A model generated the notes under the pieces. It had not been told where the DNA came from and did no database searches. It was given only the letters and a program-made list of their open reading frames with translations. This document shows, one piece after another, positions 42,423-62,860 of a stretch of DNA of 64,000 nt; position 1 is the stretch's first letter, and every line of letters begins with the position of its first letter. The stretch lies in sequence record MK250027.1; one strand, written 5' to 3'. Position numbers and translations under genes: made by a program.

Positions 42423-43973
42423 TTATGTAATTTCTTTTCGTTTTTCAAGTATATGTTTTAATATTTCATATTCTGTATTCGCTATTTTCTTATCCATTTT
42501 TGCTGCTTTACGCAATGCAAAATAATGTGTAAGAATCGCAGGAACAACAGCATTTGGATCTTTTTTATAAACTGCGCCAGAACATGTTTTAATCTCATCA
42601 GATTTTGGGATATAATTCTTATCTTTGAATAAGAATGATTCAGGAGAAATTTGAAATTGTCTCATTATAGATGGATATAGTGACGCGAAATCTAATCCAC
42701 CTATATATTTAAATATTCCTGGTCTAGTTGGCCACACAAAAGCTCCAACATATTGATTATCAGTTAGTTCTGTGTTTTTATTAAATGGTTTTTCTGGTAT
42801 TACCTTATAATTTGGGTACACAAAGTTACACATAACAACATGTGTTGGTTGAATTGTAGAGAATGCGACATTTAGTTCAAGTCTCAATTCACATGCGAGC
42901 ATATACCAAATTTCAGCAGTCTTTAAGAATCTGTCTATATGTTCAACCAATATGGTATCGATGCAGTTATAGAAAACATATTCTTTGAAATGTTCTTCGA
43001 AGAATTCTTTGAATCCCCACGGGTGATTTACCTTCTTGATACCTAACGCTTTTTCTGCGACAAAATCAAGTGTATTATTTTCTTTTGGTTGGATAGTCAT
43101 GTCCCATGTTTTATAAACCAATAAGTAGTCATAAATTATTTTATGCATAGGGACTTTCACATTGATTGTTTTACCACCGGATCTTGGAGTAATCTTAAAG
43201 TTTGTGAATGTTCTTGTAGGAGAAATTCTTTCAATATCAATATTATTGATTTTACATCTATTATAGATATATAACCAGTCGAATCCTAGAAAATTCCATC
43301 CAGACATTGCAGGAATTGGTTCGATGAATGTTATATAGTCTTCAAGCATTTCCCGTTCTGTTGGAAAAAATCTGAATTCAAATTTATATCCTTTTGTAAT
43401 ATCTGATCCATTGTTTTCCTATGAATACTTATCGATTTGTTCTTGGACCCATTGTTGTTCTTCTAATGTTAAGTCTTTACGTGACCAAATGATAGTCCTA
43501 GGAAATTGTGTCATTGATATAGTATTGATACGAGTTGACGCTTCTTCTGGATCTGGAAATCCTTCATCTGAAACTTCTGTCTCAATATCACACCACCATG
43601 TTGGAGGAATATTCATTTCAAACAGAGGATCAACTGCATGTCCAAATGAATTAAGAATTTCATTTATTCTTAATTCAGGAAGTTTATCAACAGGATGCCT
43701 ACGAACCCATTTATTATCATAAGATTTCCATTGGTGCATAACAGGTGAACCGTCTGGATTAAACTTATAACATTTGTTTACAAAATCATATTCTTGAAAT
43801 GGAGGATCTGCATTTTGTCTGTTTGTATATTTCCATTCGAACATTGATTCTTTAGGAACAGGATATTGAAGGAATTTAACTTGTCCTTGTTTATCTATAT
43901 ATGATACTATTAATTTCTTTGTCGGTGTGCCATCAGGCAATAAATAATCTACCTATTCTTTATTAATTATCAT
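42423..43973 (-). CDS. polB: Family B DNA polymerase, N-terminal piece (exonuclease plus motif A), 516 aa (two TAG)
   Basis: Joins 43419..43940 and 42423..43349. WWCDIET (ExoI), GWNFLGFDW (ExoII), YNCID (ExoIII), DFASLYPSIM (motif A). Ends with TAA in the fingers helix. Confidence 0.9.
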
Positions 43974-52905: not shown

Positions 52906-53880
52906 TTACCAAAGTGCGGCTGTATAACATAAGTTAGATGTTAATGTAGTATAACCAATAATAGATATAATTCTATTACAAGGTTCAAGAATCATTTTTT
53001 CAAATTGTTTATCATAATCTATTTCAGGTGCATATTCTATTGGATAAGCGCCAGGTAAAAATGCAAAACAATCATAATTTCTATCCTTTGCATAATACCA
53101 CTTAACTTTATCTGCTGTCTTAATAGGATTATACTTTACCTTATATTTCTTATTCTTTGGTTGATTCAAAATAAAGTTAGCAATTCCTGAAGCCTTAACC
53201 TGAATAGGACAATGTTCTCCGAATACCAACTTATTCTTATCATCAAGAACGAACTTTTGATAATTTCCTATTGAACTACCTTTTGAAATCTCTGATGGAT
53301 CTTTAAACATAAACTGTTGTTTATATCCCTTTATTTTCGCAATAATATCTTCATATGGTGGTCTTTCCTTATGTTCCTGATACCAATGCAACATATAACA
53401 TGTAAAGTCTTTTTGACATTCTCTTGCAAATGGTGGTGTAGAACCTTGAACGATCTCAAGTCCCTTATAAACGACTTCTTCCATTTGCTCCAAGAAAATA
53501 TTAGGTTCCTTAAAACACTCTGCCATTGCATAATGTTTCTTTGAAGTCAAGATAGTTGTATCTGCAATTTTCTCTAACTCAAGATTTTGAATATTTACAT
53601 CACAATTATATTTCTTTGCATATTCCTCATATTTCTGTTGCATATATGGTCCACAACCATAATTCCAAAGATCAACAACAAATTGTGCACATTTAGACTC
53701 TGGAATATCAAGCTGTTGACAAATTCTTCCAAATTCTACATATATTGAGTTGTGAGCCAGTATCTCATTTGCGAAGAATGTATGAGTATCATCTACCTCA
53801 ATATCATATACATACTCATCATTAAAATCTTCAAGTTGCTCTATTACATCAATATCCTCTACTTGTATATTGTAATTCAT
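52906..53880 (-). CDS. polB: PolB C-terminal piece fused to a 44-aa C-intein
   Basis: MNYNIQVEDID...VYDIEVDDTHTFFANEILAHN|SIYV..., then LELEKI, SKKHYA, YKGLEIV, CPIQVKAS, DKVKWYY. Confidence 0.92.
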   Translation of the reverse strand: MNYNIQVEDIDVIEQLEDFNDEYVYDIEVDDTHTFFANEILAHNSIYVEFGRICQQLDIPESKCAQFVVDLWNYGCGPYMQQKYEEYAKKYNCDVNIQNLELEKIADTTILTSKKHYAMAECFKEPNIFLEQMEEVVYKGLEIVQGSTPPFARECQKDFTCYMLHWYQEHKERPPYEDIIAKIKGYKQQFMFKDPSEISKGSSIGNYQKFVLDDKNKLVFGEHCPIQVKASGIANFILNQPKNKKYKVKYNPIKTADKVKWYYAKDRNYDCFAFLPGAYPIEYAPEIDYDKQFEKMILEPCNRIISIIGYTTLTSNLCYTAALW

Positions 53881-53956
53881 CTTTTTTCTCCTATTATTAA
53901 TTGTGTATTTTCAACATTATTAAAATGTTCTAATATATAATTATATAAATAATTTT

Positions 53957-54432
53957 TTATATTGTTTTTATATCTTCTCTATCTTTATGTGTTTTATAGA
54001 ATATCCAGTTATCAATAAAATATGGATAAATGAATAACATATTTAATTTATTATTTTTGCATCTTCCCATTTTTGAATATCAGTTTCTGTCCATGTATGA
54101 ATTAATCCATCATAATTATTTTTCGTATTTGTTTTAGAACATTTACTTAAAAAATAATTATACTTATCTTTATCTAATTCTTTATTATATAAACATTTAT
54201 TATGCCAAAATGATCCTTGATACTCTATATATAAATTATACTGTTTTATATAAAAATCACAATTATGATTATATTCTTTTGTTTTATAACATCTTATAAC
54301 ATCATCACCATATAATTCATTTAAAAAAACATATAAAATTTCTTCTTCAATAGATGTATGCTTATTATAAGATTCTGTGACTTTATCTTGTATTTCTGAT
54401 AACTATGAAATATAATCATCATCTATTACCAT
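53957..54432 (-). pseudogene. Vsr/DUF559-like endonuclease domain with a frameshift at the A5 run (54054-54058)
   Basis: CDFYIKQYNLYIEYQGSFWH...WTETDIQKWEDAK; the conserved NNKLNMLFIY continues only in the -1 frame. Confidence 0.6.
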
Positions 54433-54731
54433 ACTAAATTATTATGTTCATTTTCATAATTCTTTTCATTATAACAACACTCATCGAATTTTTTCACTTT
54501 TTCTATATATTCATCTATAATATCAATACCTAAATATTTTGCATATATTATTTTTGCATCTGATATATCACATTTATCATTCATTGTAATACAATTAACA
54601 TTATTATTCAATGCAAAGTATATATCTTTATATGTTGATATTATTTGTTTTAGAAAATATTTTAATAACGTATTATGTTTCTTAAACATATTATTCCTTA
54701 TAATCCTTATTTTTGAACGATAATATATCAT
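54426..54731 (-). CDS. Hypothetical protein, possibly N-terminal fragment of the degenerate endonuclease
   Basis: 101-aa ORF overlapping both neighbours. Confidence 0.45.
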   Translation of the reverse strand: MIYYRSKIRIIRNNMFKKHNTLLKYFLKQIISTYKDIYFALNNNVNCITMNDKCDISDAKIIYAKYLGIDIIDEYIEKVKKFDECCYNEKNYENEHNNLVW

Positions 54732-55846
54732 ATTTCAGTTATATCATTTAATTGATCTTTATTATTAATCATCTATATAAGTGATTTTATAGTTCCTTTC
54801 TTATCATTTTTATATGTAGATTCCCAAACTATTATAACCTTGCAATTCAATGTCTGTTGAATATCTTCAATTCTTTCTCTATCATGATTCCATTTATCTT
54901 TAACTGAACGTCCGTTTCTTAATATAAAATAATTTGTTTCATTAGCATTATATTTCTTTGGATTAAAATGATAAAAATCTCCATAAAATTCTATAACAAT
55001 ATTTAATGATTTATCGTAATAATCTACATGATAAAAATTATTATTTAATAACTTAACTGTATATTCTATATAAGTATCATTATCTTTATAATATTCTTTT
55101 AAATGAGAAAATAACTCTAATGATATATTTGACTTATTACCTATTAAATAATATTGTTCTGAACGTTTTTCTACAAATTCATTATATTTTTGTGTTCCAT
55201 CTTCTTTACCGTATTCTTCGATAAAATAATCTAATGTACATGTATATCTCTGACGTTCGATATAAGCATTCCATATTTTTAAACCATCTATTTCACCATG
55301 TCTTTTAATAAGATTTTCCTTTGTTACCGCTCTAGATTTATTGTATTCATCAAATTTATCTTGAGACATACCATATTTTTCATGTTTATATTCATATGTA
55401 TTTGTAACTGATTGTTTATTACAATATGAATTCCATTTTTCTAATCCTATATCTTTTCCATATCGTTTAATCATTTTTTCTTTGGTAACACATTGTCTTT
55501 CTTTTGCTACAGGGTTGAAATCCTTATCAGGTACTCCAAATCCATACTACGTATATTTTGCAGCTTTATGCGCAAATTTAAATTTTACATCTTTAAAATT
55601 TGGAAATTTCTTGCATACACAATCATAACACCTACATAAATGATATTCATTACCATTATAATTTCTAGTACTTAAAAATGATAACTTATTATTATCACAT
55701 ACTATTTTATGTGTTTTTGAGTTTATATGAAATGTACCATTATCATATATAAGAAATTTACCACATTCTTTACAATAACATATTGATGGATCTATATTAT
55801 TATCTTTACAATATTGAACTACGTTCTATTCACTTAAATATTTCAT
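54728..55846 (-). CDS. Free-standing Vsr-like homing endonuclease, 372 aa (three TAG)
   Basis: ATG overlaps the TAA of the Pol N-intein gene. Cys motifs, KYG repeats, HVDYYDK...IVIEFYGDFYH...IIVWE. Confidence 0.8.
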
Positions 55847-56658
55847 TATCTATCTAATGTTATAATTTTATCAGATTTTTTTATTTCTCTTGCAGGAACA
55901 GATATTAATTCATTATTTCGTATAACCATTATACTATGATCACCTGTAACTATAAGCTCTTTACCGGATTTAGTTTTTAACCTAAACTTATCTTTAGTTA
56001 CTTTATGTCTCATTATATAATTAATCGGTCGTGTAATAGTTTTATAATCATGATCCTTATATGATAATGTATCGTGATTATGTACAGGAATGACTTCAGA
56101 CCCATTTTGTAATTTTATAACAACATCGTCATTTTCATATTTTGCTTTAGTAAAAAAGCCTTCCATTGAAAATACTTTATTATCTATAACTACTTGAGTA
56201 TCAGCAGTTTGCGAATCCGTATCCCCCGCTACAGTTAGTGATTGGTTTCCATCAAGATACGAAAACTCGGGTCCGTCCAACGTACCTGTTTCAGTTGTCT
56301 TACCTTTTGCGATACTTACTCGTTTTGCTTTCTCCGAATCAATACCAAGTTTCTTATGCAATTCTGTATCATTCTGAAATATACCACTGAAATACGCGTT
56401 AACAGAATTCTCAGAATAATGGTTCAAATCCTGACCCTGAAGAGTAATAGACTCTGCAACTGCTGTGTTATGCGCAATGAAATACTTGCTCGCAGTTGCT
56501 CCATAAACACTATTGATAAATTTCTTTAACGCTAGCTGTTTAGTCTCATAAAAATCCCCTAAATTTTTTAATCTTTCTACTTCTTTTTCAAGTTCTTCAA
56601 TACTGCAATTCTCAGGGTCTACTTGGCAAAATTTATAATTCTTATGTTGTTCTTCCAT
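55846..56658 (-). CDS. polB: PolB middle piece (motifs B and C) fused to a 122-aa N-intein
   Basis: KQLALKKFINSVYG (motif B), AGDTD|SQTADTQV...VTGDHSIM (intein block B), TAA stop. Confidence 0.92.
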   Translation of the reverse strand: MEEQHKNYKFCQVDPENCSIEELEKEVERLKNLGDFYETKQLALKKFINSVYGATASKYFIAHNTAVAESITLQGQDLNHYSENSVNAYFSGIFQNDTELHKKLGIDSEKAKRVSIAKGKTTETGTLDGPEFSYLDGNQSLTVAGDTDSQTADTQVVIDNKVFSMEGFFTKAKYENDDVVIKLQNGSEVIPVHNHDTLSYKDHDYKTITRPINYIMRHKVTKDKFRLKTKSGKELIVTGDHSIMVIRNNELISVPAREIKKSDKIITLDR

Positions 56659-56682
56659 TTTATTCTAATTAACGATTTAATT

Positions 56683-56711
56683 ATTATACAAATAAAAATT
56701 CTATTTGTTTA
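56683..56711 (-). promoter_or_regulatory. Class II promoter TAAACA-N17-TATAAT
   Basis: Upstream of the polB middle gene. Confidence 0.6.
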
Positions 56712-56747
56712 TTAAAAACATTATTAACAATATTTAATATAAGATAT

Positions 56748-58406
56748 ATGGAAATTACAGATCAAATTATAATAGATAAGTTAACAGTATTTAGACATAA
56801 TAAAATACAATTAAATACATGTAGAATAAAAGAAACATGGTTAAAAGATCATGGTTTATATGAGTATTTAATTAATAGATTTAAAACCATAGATAATATT
56901 CAAGAAATTATATATAGGATATATTATAAATTACCGGATAATTTACAGTTACATTGTAATACTTGTGGTAATGAAATACCTTTACAATTTAGAGGATTCT
57001 TATATGGATATAATCAATATTGTTCTTATAAATGTTCTTTAAATGATCCAAATAAAATACATAAATTAACAAATGTAAAACAAAAAGATGATATAGATGA
57101 TAATTATGTATTGAATTTAATGATTAAAGACAATAGATTAGTTTCAGAATATTGTAAGAATAAAAAACTTAAGCAATTTGGTATATATGATTATATGATG
57201 AATAGATATGACGATTTACAGAAAAATAAATCTATTATTCAAGAAATTATATATAGAATGAAATATCATATAGATAAATCTCCTCGATGTCCAACATGTG
57301 GGAAATATGTTAACTTTTATAGATTTAGTGAAGGATTCAGACATTATTGTTCAAATGAATGTGCAAATAAGAATGAAAATAATGTTAACATAAAATTAAA
57401 TAATAAGCATAAAACTATAGAAAATAAATGGTTAAACCGTGGATATAAAATTAAATATACAGAAAATAAAAATGAATTTCTTGTATATAATCAATGTAAT
57501 TTACATAATCCATTTAAAATTAAAAAATATACATTCTTTAATAGACAAGGAAAAGATATAATTATGTGTCCTATTTGTAATCCTGAAAAAAATATGGAGA
57601 CTTCTATAGAATATAAAATTAGGTTAATATTAGAGAAACATAATATAAAATTTACGCAACATGTTAGGTATATAATATCACCAAGGGAATTAGACTTTTA
57701 TTTACCTGCTTATAAAGTAGCAATAGAATGTAATGGGATTTATTGGCATTCAGGGATAAACGGTAAAAATAGATTTAAAGTTAAATATGAACTATTATCC
57801 AAAACTGATATATAGATGTTAACTTTTTGGGAAGACGATATTCATTATAACATTGATAAGATAGAAAATATCATATTAAGAAGTTGCAATTTAGAAAAGA
57901 AATTATTTTCAAATGATACTGTTATTAGAGAAATAGATATTGATATATGTAAGTCATTTATTAATAATAACTCAATTAAAAAATATATTATATCTAATAT
58001 AAATTTAGGTTTATTTAAGGATGATAAATTATTATTTGTTATGACATTTTCAAATAATAATGATAATAATTATACATTAAATCAAATATGTTATAAAGAT
58101 AATTTATATGTTATAAATTCTGAAAAATTATTATTATATTATTTTTTTAATAATTATAAATTTAATAAATTGATAACATATTGCGATTTAAAAATTGAAA
58201 ATAATAAATTATATGAAAAATTAGGATTCAAATTAAATAGTGATAAATTAAAATTTAATCTGAATTATTATAATTATAGAACAACTGAACATAGAATTAA
58301 TAAGAAAGAAGTTAATCAATTATTGAAATTAGATGATTCTGATTCATTAGAAGATTATATGAAATGTTATTCAGGATATTTAATATATGAGAAAGAGAAT
58401 GTATAA
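56748..58406 (+). CDS. Vsr/DUF559-like homing endonuclease, 552 aa (one TAG)
   Basis: Joins 56748..57815 and 57816..58406. Two YLINR..QEIIYR-CxxC repeats, ELDFYLP...AIECNGIYWH, LTFWED. Confidence 0.85.
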
Positions 58407-58430
58407 TTTAAATTTATATACATTCTCTTT
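58392..58430. terminator. Bidirectional terminator between convergent endonuclease genes
   Basis: AAAGAGAATGTATA/TATACATTCTCTTT. Confidence 0.75.
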
Positions 58431-59634
58431 TATTATTTTCTAAATATTCATTTATTATAGTTTTTATTATTTCTATCTTATTGCTCCATATAGGAAGATA
58501 ATTCAGATTATTCATTTTCGCAGTTTGACATTTAAAAGGATCAATGATTGACCAAACATTTACAGCAGATTTATATTGTTTTGATATTTCTGCTTTTTGT
58601 TTCCACTTATTTAATAAATCAATATCATCTTTATTATCTTCATCAAATAAATGTTTCCCATGTGTCCAAAATGCGTTTATCTCTATAAATAAATCTAATG
58701 GTTTTATATAGAAATCTACATGGAATGGATAACGCTCATCAACATTTACATTAAACTATATATCATCTTTATCAAATATTGTTTGTAAATATTCATATGT
58801 TTGATATTCTGGTTTTGACATACCAAAATTATCTTTATATTTTTTCTTTATTGTTTTTACATATTGATCAAACTAATATTGATGAAAATTTTCTAATGAA
58901 CCATATTTTTTAATAACAGTTTCTTTTGTCTTTTCTTTATTATTAAATGTTGGATCCCCATATAATTCTAATTTTGTTTCTTTAATTTTGTTTTTTATTT
59001 CTTCATTTTTTGCAGGGTTATCAACGCCATATTTTTTAATAACAGTTTCTCTTGATTTTTCTTTATTATTATCTGACTAAAAACTATATTTACACCCATA
59101 TTTTTTTAAACATGTATTAATTGATTTCTATTTAACTTCTTCATTCTATCCTGAAAATTCTACANNNNNNNNNNNNNNNNNNNNNNNNNNTGTCTTCTAT
59201 AAATATTCCGATGTTTTTGTATATGATGAAACTCCATATTTTTCTAAACATGTTTGTTTTATTTTATCTTTAACTGATTTTAACTACATTTGATGTTCAA
59301 CACCATATCGTTCTTTTAATGTATTTTTTATTTTATTCTATACATTAACTGAATTCATTACACATCGTGAATTTGAACAAAATTTACGAAATCCTCTACT
59401 ATAACAATTAAATCTCACAGGTTTCCCACATGTTTCACATACTGGTCTTATTTCTATTTTATTTACAATACGGTATATTGTCTCCTATATAGATTCGCTA
59501 TCATTATATCTATTAATTAAATAATCATAAATATCTTGATGTTTATTTAACCAAGATAATCTTGTATAATTTTTTGCTAACTAATTCTTTTTTGTTATAA
59601 ATTTTTCTTTTATGTAGTCATCATTAATAATCAT
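58414..59634 (-). CDS. Vsr-like homing endonuclease with KYG repeats (many TAG; spans a 26-N gap; absent from track)
   Basis: YLINRYNDSESI(TAG)ETIYRI, CETC, TCLEKYGV repeats, YPFHVDFYIK...FIEINAFWTH...AKMNNLNYLPIW. Confidence 0.8.
59165..59190. other. Assembly gap
   Basis: 26 N inside the KYG repeat region. Confidence 1.
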
Positions 59635-59675
59635 ATCTAATAATAAATTATTATTATTTTTAATTATATAAAAAA

Positions 59676-59718
59676 TGAGGTAAATAGTTTTTAACAGAAT
59701 TAAAACTATTTACCTCAT
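59676..59718. terminator. Terminator after the RecA C-terminal gene
   Basis: 17-bp inverted repeat ATGAGGTAAATAGTTTT/AAAACTATTTACCTCAT. Confidence 0.75.
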
Positions 59719-59725
59719 TAATATA

Positions 59726-60463
59726 TTAATTAATACTTGCTTCTTTTATAGGATCTTCATCATTATCATTTTCATCTGAAATACCCATTGTTTCCTCTAA
59801 ATCTTTAACATCATCAAATGCAGATTGATCTGGTAATTGGAACATTGGGTGAATAACATGCTCATTTATATAATCAAGATATTCTGGTGTAAATACCTTA
59901 TCAGACCAAAATTCAGTAAAAGGAACTTGTTCATTAAGATGTTTTACTACAATATACCTTGCTGTATCTTTCGGTAAACAATAATGTGTTTCACCATCAT
60001 CTGTTGTCCATGTATATACTTTCTTTTTATCTGAATCTGATAATTTATCATATTCTTTTTGCGTAAGTAAATTTCCTCTACAAACACCTGAATTGTCCCA
60101 TGTCATAAATTGTTCCAAACCAACATATGGGTTAGGTTTTTTAAAATATGGAATTTGAAATTTCACTTTAATTGGTCTGCAAAAACGAGACTTAACTGGT
60201 TTTGCTGTAACTAAAACACCATTCTTTGTACCTGCATCAGAACCTTGTCTTGATTTTGCAGCTGAATCATTCTCTTTATCTTCCAGTTTAGCAGCACTTA
60301 ATTCAATTGTAATTGATGCATTATATACAATACCTGAATTATGATTTATAATACCATTTGCAGAAACATAATTATGTGTGTCTTTAACTGTTAAATCTAT
60401 TACATCCTCACTTAATTCTGACTATATCTTCTTTACAATCTTTAACTTTCTATATTTCATCAT
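59726..60463 (-). CDS. uvsX: RecA/UvsX C-terminal piece fused to a 42-aa C-intein (TAG at codon 14)
   Basis: MMKYRKLKIVKKI(TAG)SELSEDVIDLTVKDTHNYVSANGIINHN|SGIVYNASITIEL...KSRF, in frame with track ORF 59726..60166. Confidence 0.9.
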
Positions 60464-61790
60464 TTATATATTGCGTTATTTTTTTATATTCTAAATATTT
60501 AAAAACTGTTTCTGAAATTCTAACAATACCTAATACATTATTATCTATTAATAAAATATCATTATCTCTTTGCTTATCCAATTCTTCCTAATGAAATACA
60601 CCTTGTCCACCATCATATTCAAATATAATTATTTTACCTTTATATTCTAAATACCCATCACATGCATAAAATATTTTATTTCGTGTTTTATCTGATATTT
60701 CATCTGGAATTATTACTATATATGGTTTATGAATGATTTTCTTATCGATATATTTTTGTAAAAATTCAAAACATCTATTTTCTGATTCTGATATATTTGT
60801 CATCCAGCCACCTTTTATTTTACATAAAAAGTTATCACTATGTTTCCAATTTTTCCAAATATTTTTTGCTAAATTTGATTGTAATTCTTTTTTCTTTAAA
60901 TAATCTTCATATGATTTATAACCTTTATATTCCTCACATGATGGATTAATTTCATGCACTTTTAATTTAGCTTCATCATCAGAATATCCTAACTTCTTCC
61001 AATAATTAAACGTCCATACACTATGTTCTTTTGCATAATATGAAGCTTTCTTTTTTGCATCCTCTATAGTTAGCCCTAAATTTAACCAATATTTTGTTGT
61101 GCTTTTAGAACATGTTGAATTATTCTATTGAACTTTACTTACTTCTATTTTTGCGTCTTCTAATGTATAACCTTTATTTAACCAATATTCAACACAACGC
61201 GGTGATCTATTTTTATTTAATTCTCGTATAATTGATTCTGCTTCAGTATCACTATATCCTCGTGCTAAATAAAACGATTTACTACTTTTAATATATCCTT
61301 TATTCTACTTATCAGGATAATATTGTTTACACCAAATCATTAACTAATCATTAATATCTCGTTCTGTTATAAAATCAGAAAATGTTATGAAATTTATAAA
61401 TCTTTTAATAAAAGAAATATTATTCAAATTAAATGAATATTTATTATCTTTAATGAATGAATTAAATATATCATCTTTATTAAAATATACAACTGTCTTT
61501 TTATACTTATTTAATATAATTTTTTTATATTCATCAAATGAATATCCTCTAACATCCCAATATAAAAATGTTGTATTTTTATGTTTATTTGTAATATTCT
61601 TTAAATAATTTAATAATATATCTATTATTTCTTGAGAGCCATATACTTTATTTTCGCTAAATAACTATTGTAACTTATTAATATACTATGTATTATTTGT
61701 ATTAATATTAAAATTATAAAACTTATTATATTTGTTTATAAACTATATAAACTCATTTATATCAAATACATTTATTTCTACTTTTTTCAT
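60408..61790 (-). CDS. Free-standing Vsr-like homing endonuclease, about 460 aa (many TAG)
   Basis: Read-through ORF with YW-x-x-KGY repeats and CDGYL...IFEYDGG...FH; overlaps the C-intein start and ends in TGA. Confidence 0.8.
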
Positions 61791-61885
61791 ATTAAACATT
61801 TCAAATTTTTGATTATTTTATACCTTATAATATTTATTCATATATAAAGTAAAAATAATCAAAAATTAAAAAATATTTTATGGTA

Positions 61886-62860
61886 TTATTCAGAAATTGC
61901 ATAAATTTCATCATTTTCATTTAATTCTGAAACTATTTTCCATGAGCTATCCAACTCTGGTTTATCAGGATTAATAAGAAATCTATGTGTATTTGAACAT
62001 GTAATAGTCTCTCCATTATCAAATGTAAATGTATATGTCGGTTTTTTAAAATGCCAAAGTTTCTCTACATCATGATATTCACCATCATGTGACAATACTT
62101 TATCTCCAACAACAACATCTTTCATTTGTTTAATTCCATTATTTGTAATAATTTTTTCATCTGGTCGTAAACAACCCATTGCTTGTATATTCTGAGGAAT
62201 AAATGACATAGATTGATATACATGGTTCACTACAATCCAAGGAATTTGCAATTTTGCAATTGGAGTAGCACAAACTCTAAACATTGCTTTAGTATCTTTT
62301 GCTTTTGTAAAATCTGCTTTTTGTGAACCTGACAATGTATCTTCACGTTCCTTTTCAGATGTTAAATTTCCGAGAGAATCCAATACAATAATAACTTTAT
62401 CATGTTGACCATACTTATCTTGTTGTTCTTGCAATTTATCACATAAATTTGCAATAAATTGGCTTGTCTCCATAATTGTATTAACTTTTTTAATAATTAA
62501 TTTAGATGGATCTACTCCAAGACGCCTAACAAAATCAGAATCTATTGCACCTTCAGAATCAAGATAAATTGGAATATAACCTAATTTTTGAGCTTCCCTA
62601 CAACATGAACATGCTAAAAAAGATTTACCAGCGCCAGATGTACCCGAGAACGTTACAACTCTACCAGTCGGTATTGCTTTATAAATATCACCTGAACAAC
62701 ATGCATTTAAAATATAATTACCTGTTGAAATCCATTCTTTTATATTTGAATACGCTGAATCTGCAATAATTTCAGCTTGATCATCTATACTACTTACCAT
62801 TGACATTAATGAACCAATACCACCTTCAAAATCTTCGCTTGACTACTTTTTCTTTGCCAT
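61886..62860 (-). CDS. uvsX: RecA/UvsX N-terminal piece fused to a 95-aa N-intein (TAG at codon 6)
   Basis: ISTGNYILN, GTSGAGKS (Walker A), YLDSE, IVLDS (Walker B), VNHVY, QAMG|CLRPDEKI...TCSNTHRF, TAA stop. Confidence 0.92.

Follow-up and report, generated by a model that had tools for sequence, protein, structure and literature searches.

When two split inteins reside in one phage genome and the charges of their halves run in opposite directions, is this a safeguard against mis-splicing, or did each intein simply bring its own polarity along? The question is raised by a stretch of 64,000 nucleotides of sequence record MK250027.1 (the window; all positions are those of the whole stretch), in which a UvsX/RecA-like recombinase (RecA) and a family-B DNA polymerase (PolB, or Pol) are each interrupted on the minus strand by a split intein, composed of an N-terminal half (IntN) and a C-terminal half (IntC). 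A sequence-only reading of positions 53749–62173, the ends of which coincide with those of Pol IntC (53749–53880, −) and RecA IntN (61889–62173, −), had proposed that the opposite polarities are built in to keep the two pairs from mis-splicing. The interpretation to which we assign a probability of roughly 0.78 is that the region contains two independently acquired 'fractured genes' in a Lak-like, TAG-recoded megaphage, and that the polarities are inherited from the respective intein families.

Two interrupted genes with inteins of different families

The two loci share one layout, in which an N-terminal part with IntN is followed by a free-standing open reading frame (ORF) and then by IntC with the C-terminal part. 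The IntN halves stop in TAA and the IntC ORFs start at ATG, so that the halves are separate ORFs at both loci. Profile PF14890 matches all four halves, its N-terminal part in both IntN and its positions 118/123–155 in both IntC, and all four intein boundaries are fixed by intein-free alleles in relatives. Both pairs classify as real canonical split inteins (HINT class 1), split at the endonuclease-insertion site.

The N-extein of the recombinase (62174–62860, −; 229 residues; Pfam RecA 1e-12, PHROG UvsX-like 1e-45) is collinear with the intein-free RecA of relatives L003 and L004, and runs into an IntN of 95 residues with PF14890/Hint matches, Cys1, a block B of the form SNTH, and a TAA stop at 61886–61888. 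The 42-residue IntC (60338–60463, −; PF14890 positions 123–155, E 1.6e-6) ends its blocks F/G with NHN and is followed by a +1 serine (NHN|S). It is complete only if TAG is read as sense, because an in-frame TAG (60422–60424) occupies codon 14. The C-extein (59729–60337, −; 203 residues; TAA stop at 59726–59728) matches contiguous RecA in L003, L004 and L005 by tblastn, and the junction AMG|SG is identical to that of L003, whose RecA reads QNIQAMGSGIVYNAS without interruption.

In the polymerase, the extein part of piece 2 (56215–56658, −; 148 residues; Pfam DNA_pol_B positions 148–239) ends with GDTD and is followed by an IntN of 122 residues (55849–56214, −; PF14890 8e-11; TAA stop at 55846–55848) that has Ser1 and TGDH in block B and lacks cysteine. 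The 44-residue IntC (PF14890 positions 118–155; PDB matches PolB16 8cpn and 9hth) closes its blocks F/G with AHN before a +1 serine (AHN|S) and is continued by piece 3, a C-extein of 280 residues (52909–53748, −; TAA stop at 52906–52908). Intein-free alleles in L012 and L013 read GDTD|S[VI]YVEFGR. There is no cysteine anywhere in the Pol intein of the window, and the nucleophile positions are occupied by Ser1 and Ser+1.

The remaining part of the polymerase, piece 1 (42423–43973, −), comprises the exonuclease and the N-terminal palm in 516 residues with 2 TAG codons (Pfam DNA_pol_B_exo1 2e-11 and DNA_pol_B positions 28–153; PHROG DNA polymerase 7e-68). It has no intein, ends in the fingers region and is encoded downstream of piece 3, at a distance of about 9 kb. 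The gene is thus found in three pieces (42423–43973, 55846–56658 and 52906–53880, all −) in permuted order. Since 52 other Pol piece-2 proteins share the start point, and one PHROG family is as long as piece 1, the break between pieces 1 and 2 appears to be ancestral.

The best solved relative of Pol IntN is 9hth (E 2.9e-12), and Pol IntC matches PolB16 8cpn and 9hth with E values of 3e-4 to 4e-5. Entry 9hth, deposited as 'DNA-directed DNA polymerase', is probably the structure of the Aes123 PolB1 intein, as judged from its C-extein, which starts with SV (cf. GDTD|SVYV), and from PMC11923092. The Pol intein is assigned to this cysteine-less Aes123 PolB1/PolB16 type with Ser1/Ser+1. Among solved structures, RecA IntN has its closest relative in gp41-1 (6qaz, E 4e-6); RecA IntC gave no gp41-1 match by phmmer at E up to 10 and matches generic block F/G only. 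The Pol and RecA inteins share 22% identity in IntN and 35% in IntC, and can be placed in different families.

Charge patterns and predicted pairing of the halves

Charge was counted as K + R − D − E and compared with a background of all segments of the same length in ORFs of the window. Two of the four halves behave as the sequence-only reading had described them. Pol IntC is strongly acidic, with a net charge of −13 over 44 residues and not a single lysine or arginine, at the 0.7% tail of the background, and RecA IntN has an acidic tail, its net −7 over 95 residues lying entirely in the second half (second lobe −7). The description of the other two as basic holds in part. The second lobe of Pol IntN is basic (+8), but the complete half (+4 over 122 residues) is unremarkable, and in RecA IntC the first 12–13 residues carry +6, at the 0.03% tail, whereas the remainder is acidic and the net charge over 42 residues is only +2; the basic string quoted earlier ends one residue before the in-frame TAG. 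The second lobes fall at about the 4% (Pol) and 5% (RecA) tails, while RecA IntC and the two IntN, taken in full, do not stand out from the background.

At homologous positions of the IntC head the charge is inverted, with glutamate or aspartate in Pol versus lysine or arginine in the RecA, radical-SAM and helicase inteins, and the aligned IntN tails read AREIKKSDKI in Pol versus SELNENDEI in RecA. The part of RecA IntC adjacent to block F (QSELSED) is acidic, as in the IntC of Pol and gp41-1, and for this reason the reversal is partial: it affects no more than the head of IntC and the tail or second lobe of IntN, and RecA IntC is a dipole. The claim of opposite polarity therefore stands for net charge, IntC head and IntN second lobe, and fails for the block-F-proximal strand, which has the same sign in both. 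The RecA strand equivalent to beta3 of gp41-1 (KLWHFKKPTY), in a register inferred by homology, keeps its lysines and is mildly basic. Both possible cross pairs are like-charged, RecA IntN (−7) with Pol IntC (−13) and the Pol second lobe (+8) with the RecA IntC head (+6). By itself, the finding of two inteins of differing polarity is not significant and roughly equals a coin-flip, given that natural split inteins come in either polarity and that their halves complement each other in charge.

The pairing of Pol IntC was modelled in a three-chain fold with Pol IntN and RecA IntN, in which Pol IntC was the partner. Its ipSAE score on Pol IntN was 0.87, as compared to 0.12 for the best control, in which a replacement took the place of Pol IntN and the only HINT partner left was RecA IntN. 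Of 78 solved complexes 51 reach the score mark, and of 108 mismatched pairs 2, counts that can serve only as a rough guide because the job differs from those of the calibration. At least 91% of contacts are shared between runs, and the predicted local distance difference test (pLDDT) value of the partner is at least 78. All confident contacts of Pol IntC are predicted to be with Pol IntN, including an antiparallel pairing of its residues 15–29 with intein residues 63–77, the basic strand. The multimer check that had been proposed for cognate and non-cognate pairs is thus in favour of the cognate Pol pair; the 0.12 for RecA IntN with Pol IntC means no support for this cross pair and does not count as evidence of non-binding.

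Since Pol IntC contacts only Pol IntN in the model (0.87; cross pair 0.12), the two pairs are likely to be mutually orthogonal. The earlier suggestion of a natural orthogonal pair may well be correct in this respect, also in view of the 22% and 35% identities, but charge as an adaptive cause of orthogonality is unproven.

Origin of the opposite polarities

Among 52 Pol homologues (45–99% identity) the second lobe is net positive in 52 of 52, with values from +1 to +13 and a mean of +7, and a complete relative of 553 kb (G002) has a Pol IntC identical to that of the window together with an intein-free RecA. The RecA-type inteins keep their polarity as well: the second lobe of IntN ranges from −7 to −10 in L027, L030, P0011 and P0013, the two recovered IntC (L027 and L030) carry +1 and +5, and the acidic and basic segments are also retained in a contiguous copy of the RecA-type intein, in which no capture of one half by the other is needed. 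The proposal that the reversal is built in to stop mis-splicing finds no support in this occurrence of the polarities in 52 Pol homologues, in a genome with an intein-free RecA and in RecA-type relatives.

A survey of related records with PF14890 revealed more split inteins, in radical-SAM, helicase, ligase-like and IMPDH-like genes. In all of these the second lobe of IntN is net negative, and the recovered IntC carry +4 (radical-SAM) and +1 (helicase). Only the Pol family is N+/C− among the canonical split inteins of the Lak-like records surveyed, and any second intein is therefore automatically opposite to Pol. A scan with a narrower IntN alignment mostly returned inteins that are contiguous and reside in different host genes, and it added no genome with multiple split inteins.

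That the opposite polarity was selected, or results from a filter on invading inteins, so that it prevents Pol–RecA mis-splicing and electrostatics are the cause of orthogonality, is considered unlikely. The idea draws on the like charges within both cross pairs, on the inverted charges where the IntC heads and the IntN tails align, and on the lack of in-silico support for RecA IntN with Pol IntC (0.12). Furthermore, wherever a related record contains two canonical split inteins, they are of opposite type (N+/C− and N−/C+), and the three split inteins of G002 occur in three different formats (N+/C−, N−/C+ and an atypically split intein in a ClpX-like gene). However, the polarities are older than co-residence, as indicated by the 52 homologues and by G002, and the pattern arises automatically if only the Pol family is N+/C−. 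With 22% and 35% identity the two inteins have also diverged so far that charge is not required for their specificity; unrelated split inteins are in most cases orthogonal in any event, and 15 of 24 tested ones were found to be mutually so (PMC7090010). The same sign of the block-F-proximal strand in RecA and Pol IntC does not fit a selected reversal either, and in the Npu intein a charge swap of beta3/beta6 by itself did not end cross-splicing (10.1101/546465), although an earlier report, as cited in that work, described suppression of cross-reactivity by a charge swap that extended over the complete N and C fragments of Npu DnaE. Finally, the sample of genomes is too small to show avoidance. 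A related idea, that co-resident split inteins in megaphages are filtered in such a way that no two share a format (charge polarity or split site), is still more doubtful; if true, electrostatic polarity would be a real compatibility rule for intein invasion.

Family inheritance of the polarities can be combined with the properties of the two genes in one scenario. In both RecA and PolB the cut falls within a conserved motif, AMG|SG and GDTD|S, respectively. As in the families to which the inteins belong, the halves of each gene would be translated separately, IntN and IntC would find each other via complementary local charges, and the halves would fold into a HINT domain and trans-splice to yield a 432-residue recombinase and a 428-residue C-terminal portion of the polymerase. 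The latter would then have to pair non-covalently with the separately encoded N-terminal piece of 516 residues. The opposite polarity would be a lineage trait of each intein family and not a co-adaptation in this genome, and orthogonality would stem mainly from deep sequence divergence, with like-charge repulsion of the cross pairs as a plausible extra contribution.

Some observations weigh against this interpretation. A suppressor tRNA(CUA) was not found in the window or in the 249 kb of the nearest record (G001), of which the tRNA array is located at the end of the 249-kb fragment, and the decoding of TAG for this reason rests on ORF evidence and literature. The free-standing ORF of 463 residues in the RecA locus has no match to any Pfam or PHROG family, nuclease families included. 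The survey of other Lak-like genomes with multiple inteins, as called for in the sequence-only reading, brought to light no related record in which two canonical split inteins agree in polarity, in a sample of one complete and a few partial genomes that has no statistical power; a selective filter for opposite polarity, although unlikely, would fit this result. The three-chain test, moreover, differs from its calibration, and its high score may come from likeness to solved inteins.

Recoding of TAG and separate intein halves

The GC content across the window is 20–33%, and its relatives are Lak-like contigs of 330–550 kb; for Lak phages, translation of TAG as glutamine has been published (PMC8346664). 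If TAG is taken as sense, many ORFs of the window become longer, and all ORFs of at least 150 residues then end in TAA or TGA. Pfam domains span TAG codons in the prohead protease, DUF285 and the PolB exonuclease domain.

A true stop at the TAG in RecA IntC, with a decaying and unspliced RecA and a Pol pair that alone is functional, is very improbable. With translation table 11 the IntC ORF is reduced to 13 codons, which together with the failure to find tRNA(CUA) could be taken in favour of such decay. Yet dozens of genes of the window that are otherwise intact contain in-frame TAG, and Pfam domains extend across such codons; TAA terminates each of the four intein-bearing ORFs, and both the catalytic blocks and the extein past the TAG are intact. 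The codon is kept in L001 and L002 and aligns with a sense codon (GAA/GAG) in L027 and L030, and the published code of Lak phages reads TAG as glutamine. Besides codon 14 of RecA IntC, TAG is present at codon 6 of the RecA N-part (62843–62845); the counts are 0 for Pol pieces 2 and 3 and 2 for Pol piece 1, and each intervening endonuclease-like ORF contains 3–10.

The possibility that the intervening ORFs sit in self-splicing introns and that each intein is contiguous as a protein is hardly credible: the spans from IntN stop to IntC start (60464–61885, 1422 nucleotides; 53881–55845, 1965 nucleotides) are exact multiples of three with the halves in the same frame, and many group I introns exist in related huge gut phages (PMC12880540), but two in-frame spans have a chance of 1 in 9, the region has no match to an Rfam intron family even at E up to 1, the IntN ORFs end in TAA and the IntC ORFs begin with ATG, and 52 further Pol piece-2 proteins share the end point.

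Relation to known split inteins

With the Aes123 PolB1/PolB16 inteins (9hth, 8cpn; PMC11923092) the Pol pair of the window shares the host protein, the GDTD|S site, Ser1/Ser+1, the split at the endonuclease site and the combination of a basic IntN with an acidic IntC. About half of the residues are identical, and this only across the second lobe. The Aes123 inteins are from T4-like phages, whereas the present one belongs to a Lak-like TAG-recoded megaphage and is known here from sequence, and its host polymerase differs by an extra intein-free break and a third piece downstream. Association of these halves was reported to be electrostatically driven, with a preference for positive substitutions in the N-fragment so as not to oppose binding of the C-fragment (PMC11923092).

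The RecA pair resembles gp41-1 (6qaz) in Cys1/Ser+1, in a block B of the form SxxH, in the fractured-gene context, and in an IntC with an 'MM + basic' head that is followed by an acidic stretch. The host is UvsX/RecA instead of the gp41 helicase, and the polarity is different as well: gp41-1 was reported to be N+/C− on long strands (PMC2677866), whereas the RecA pair is net N−/C+ with a much more basic head. This polarity, with a negative IntN and a positive IntC, is shared with the cyanobacterial DnaE split inteins (Npu/Ssp), and the electrostatic 'capture and collapse' model of their association applies to the RecA pair too. There is, however, no detectable close sequence relationship with DnaE, the host protein is another one, and the halves are adjacent in the window and at distant loci in DnaE.

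The fractured genes described by Dassa et al. 2009 (PMC2677866) are laid out on one strand in the same way, with an intein broken at the same point, halves that are locally complementary in charge and, likewise, Vsr-like endonuclease ORFs nearby. The window differs in that two such loci lie 3 kb apart in one identified genome, that the intervening ORFs are rich in recoded TAG, and that the ORF of the RecA locus is outside recognised nuclease families. Both polarities were already reported in 2009, N+/C− for gp41-1 and gp41-8 and N−/C+ for IMPDH-1, NrdA-2, NrdJ-1 and DnaE (PMC2677866), and engineering of orthogonality by charge swaps has been published as well; the charge idea is therefore not new. 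Inteins are not mentioned in the Lak phage papers that were searched.

The known natural split inteins gain two members from a single identified genome, a cysteine-free pair of the PolB1 type and a UvsX/RecA pair of which the IntN is nearest to gp41-1. Both could join the protein-ligation toolbox, in which they are likely to be mutually orthogonal. Lak-like megaphages are rich in split inteins, with examples in Pol, RecA, radical-SAM, helicase, ligase-like, IMPDH-like and ClpX genes, and this richness makes them a natural test bed for whether polarity limits the coexistence of inteins.

Intervening ORFs and further inteins in relatives

Read along the minus strand, a gp32-like single-stranded DNA-binding protein is followed by the RecA N-extein with IntN, the 463-residue ORF, and RecA IntC with the C-extein; then come two homing-endonuclease-like ORFs, PolB piece 2 with IntN, a 372-residue ORF, two small ORFs, and IntC with the PolB C-extein. 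The 463-residue ORF (60408–61799, −) is an ORF call with 8 TAG as sense, which overlaps the start of RecA IntC by 56 nucleotides; from its position only, it is presumed to be a homing endonuclease. The ORF of 372 residues between the Pol halves (54728–55846, −; 3 TAG) starts with a 1-nucleotide overlap with the IntN stop, matches phrog_22677 (3e-48; without annotated function), and has a Vsr-like C-terminus with a weak match (Pfam MTES_1575, E 0.047). The two small ORFs (54043–54731, −) have 101 and 129 residues, the second being Vsr/HNH-like (Vsr E 0.022, phrog_559 6e-8, phrog_3339 6e-5).

Between the two loci, a DUF7487 homing-endonuclease-like ORF (58414–59634, −; Pfam DUF7487 3e-25, PHROG homing endonuclease 2e-23) contains an assembly gap (59165–59190) that is outside all inteins and exteins; it follows the RecA stop codon at a distance of 536 nucleotides and is separated from the Pol piece by 2.5 kb. 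If the gap is taken at its nominal size of 26 N, the frame is open throughout, and the same KKYG-type repeats are present on both flanks. The other homing-endonuclease-like ORF (56748–58406, +) has 552 residues and 1 TAG, and matches PHROG 3339/559 at about 1e-43, with weak Vsr/DUF559 matches.

Relatives differ in the cargo that separates their RecA intein halves. An ORF for a 1020-residue helicase-methyltransferase takes this place in L027 and L028 (L027 2593–5655), and in L030 (6736–7217) the place holds only remnants, of 112 and 47 residues, of the 463-residue ORF of the window, which looks like turnover and decay of a mobile gene. A more distant RecA (62% identity) in L005 (10001–11700, +) has a contiguous mini-intein of 144 residues located 13 residues upstream, after HVYA; in view of this different site, RecA must have been invaded at least two times in this phage group.

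A 159-residue ORF in three Lak-like records (L036 1483–1962, −, in G002; L038 in G003; L091 in G009) is a contiguous mini-intein of the RecA type, 55% identical to RecA IntN of the window, with about 8 and 5 'extein' residues; in G002 it is downstream of a Dam-like methyltransferase. A Pol piece-2 homologue of 411 residues (P0067) seems to carry a contiguous mini-intein and then a second, split IntN in tandem.

Other split inteins of relatives are inserted at catalytic motifs, each with a free-standing ORF downstream (L032/L042 in G002, L035/L045 in G003, L051 in G008, L034 in G006). The insertion sites include the third cysteine of the radical-SAM motif CxxxCxxC, DE|CH of a helicase and GSGS|R|C of an IMPDH-like gene, and a further one after KMHG that, by eye only, resembles motif I of a ligase nucleotidyltransferase. 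In the ClpX-like ATPase of G002 (L047 1059–1611, +) the P-loop (GVGK|...|T) is interrupted by the atypically split intein, which has a short IntN of 37 residues (+1) and a long IntC of 122 residues (−17).

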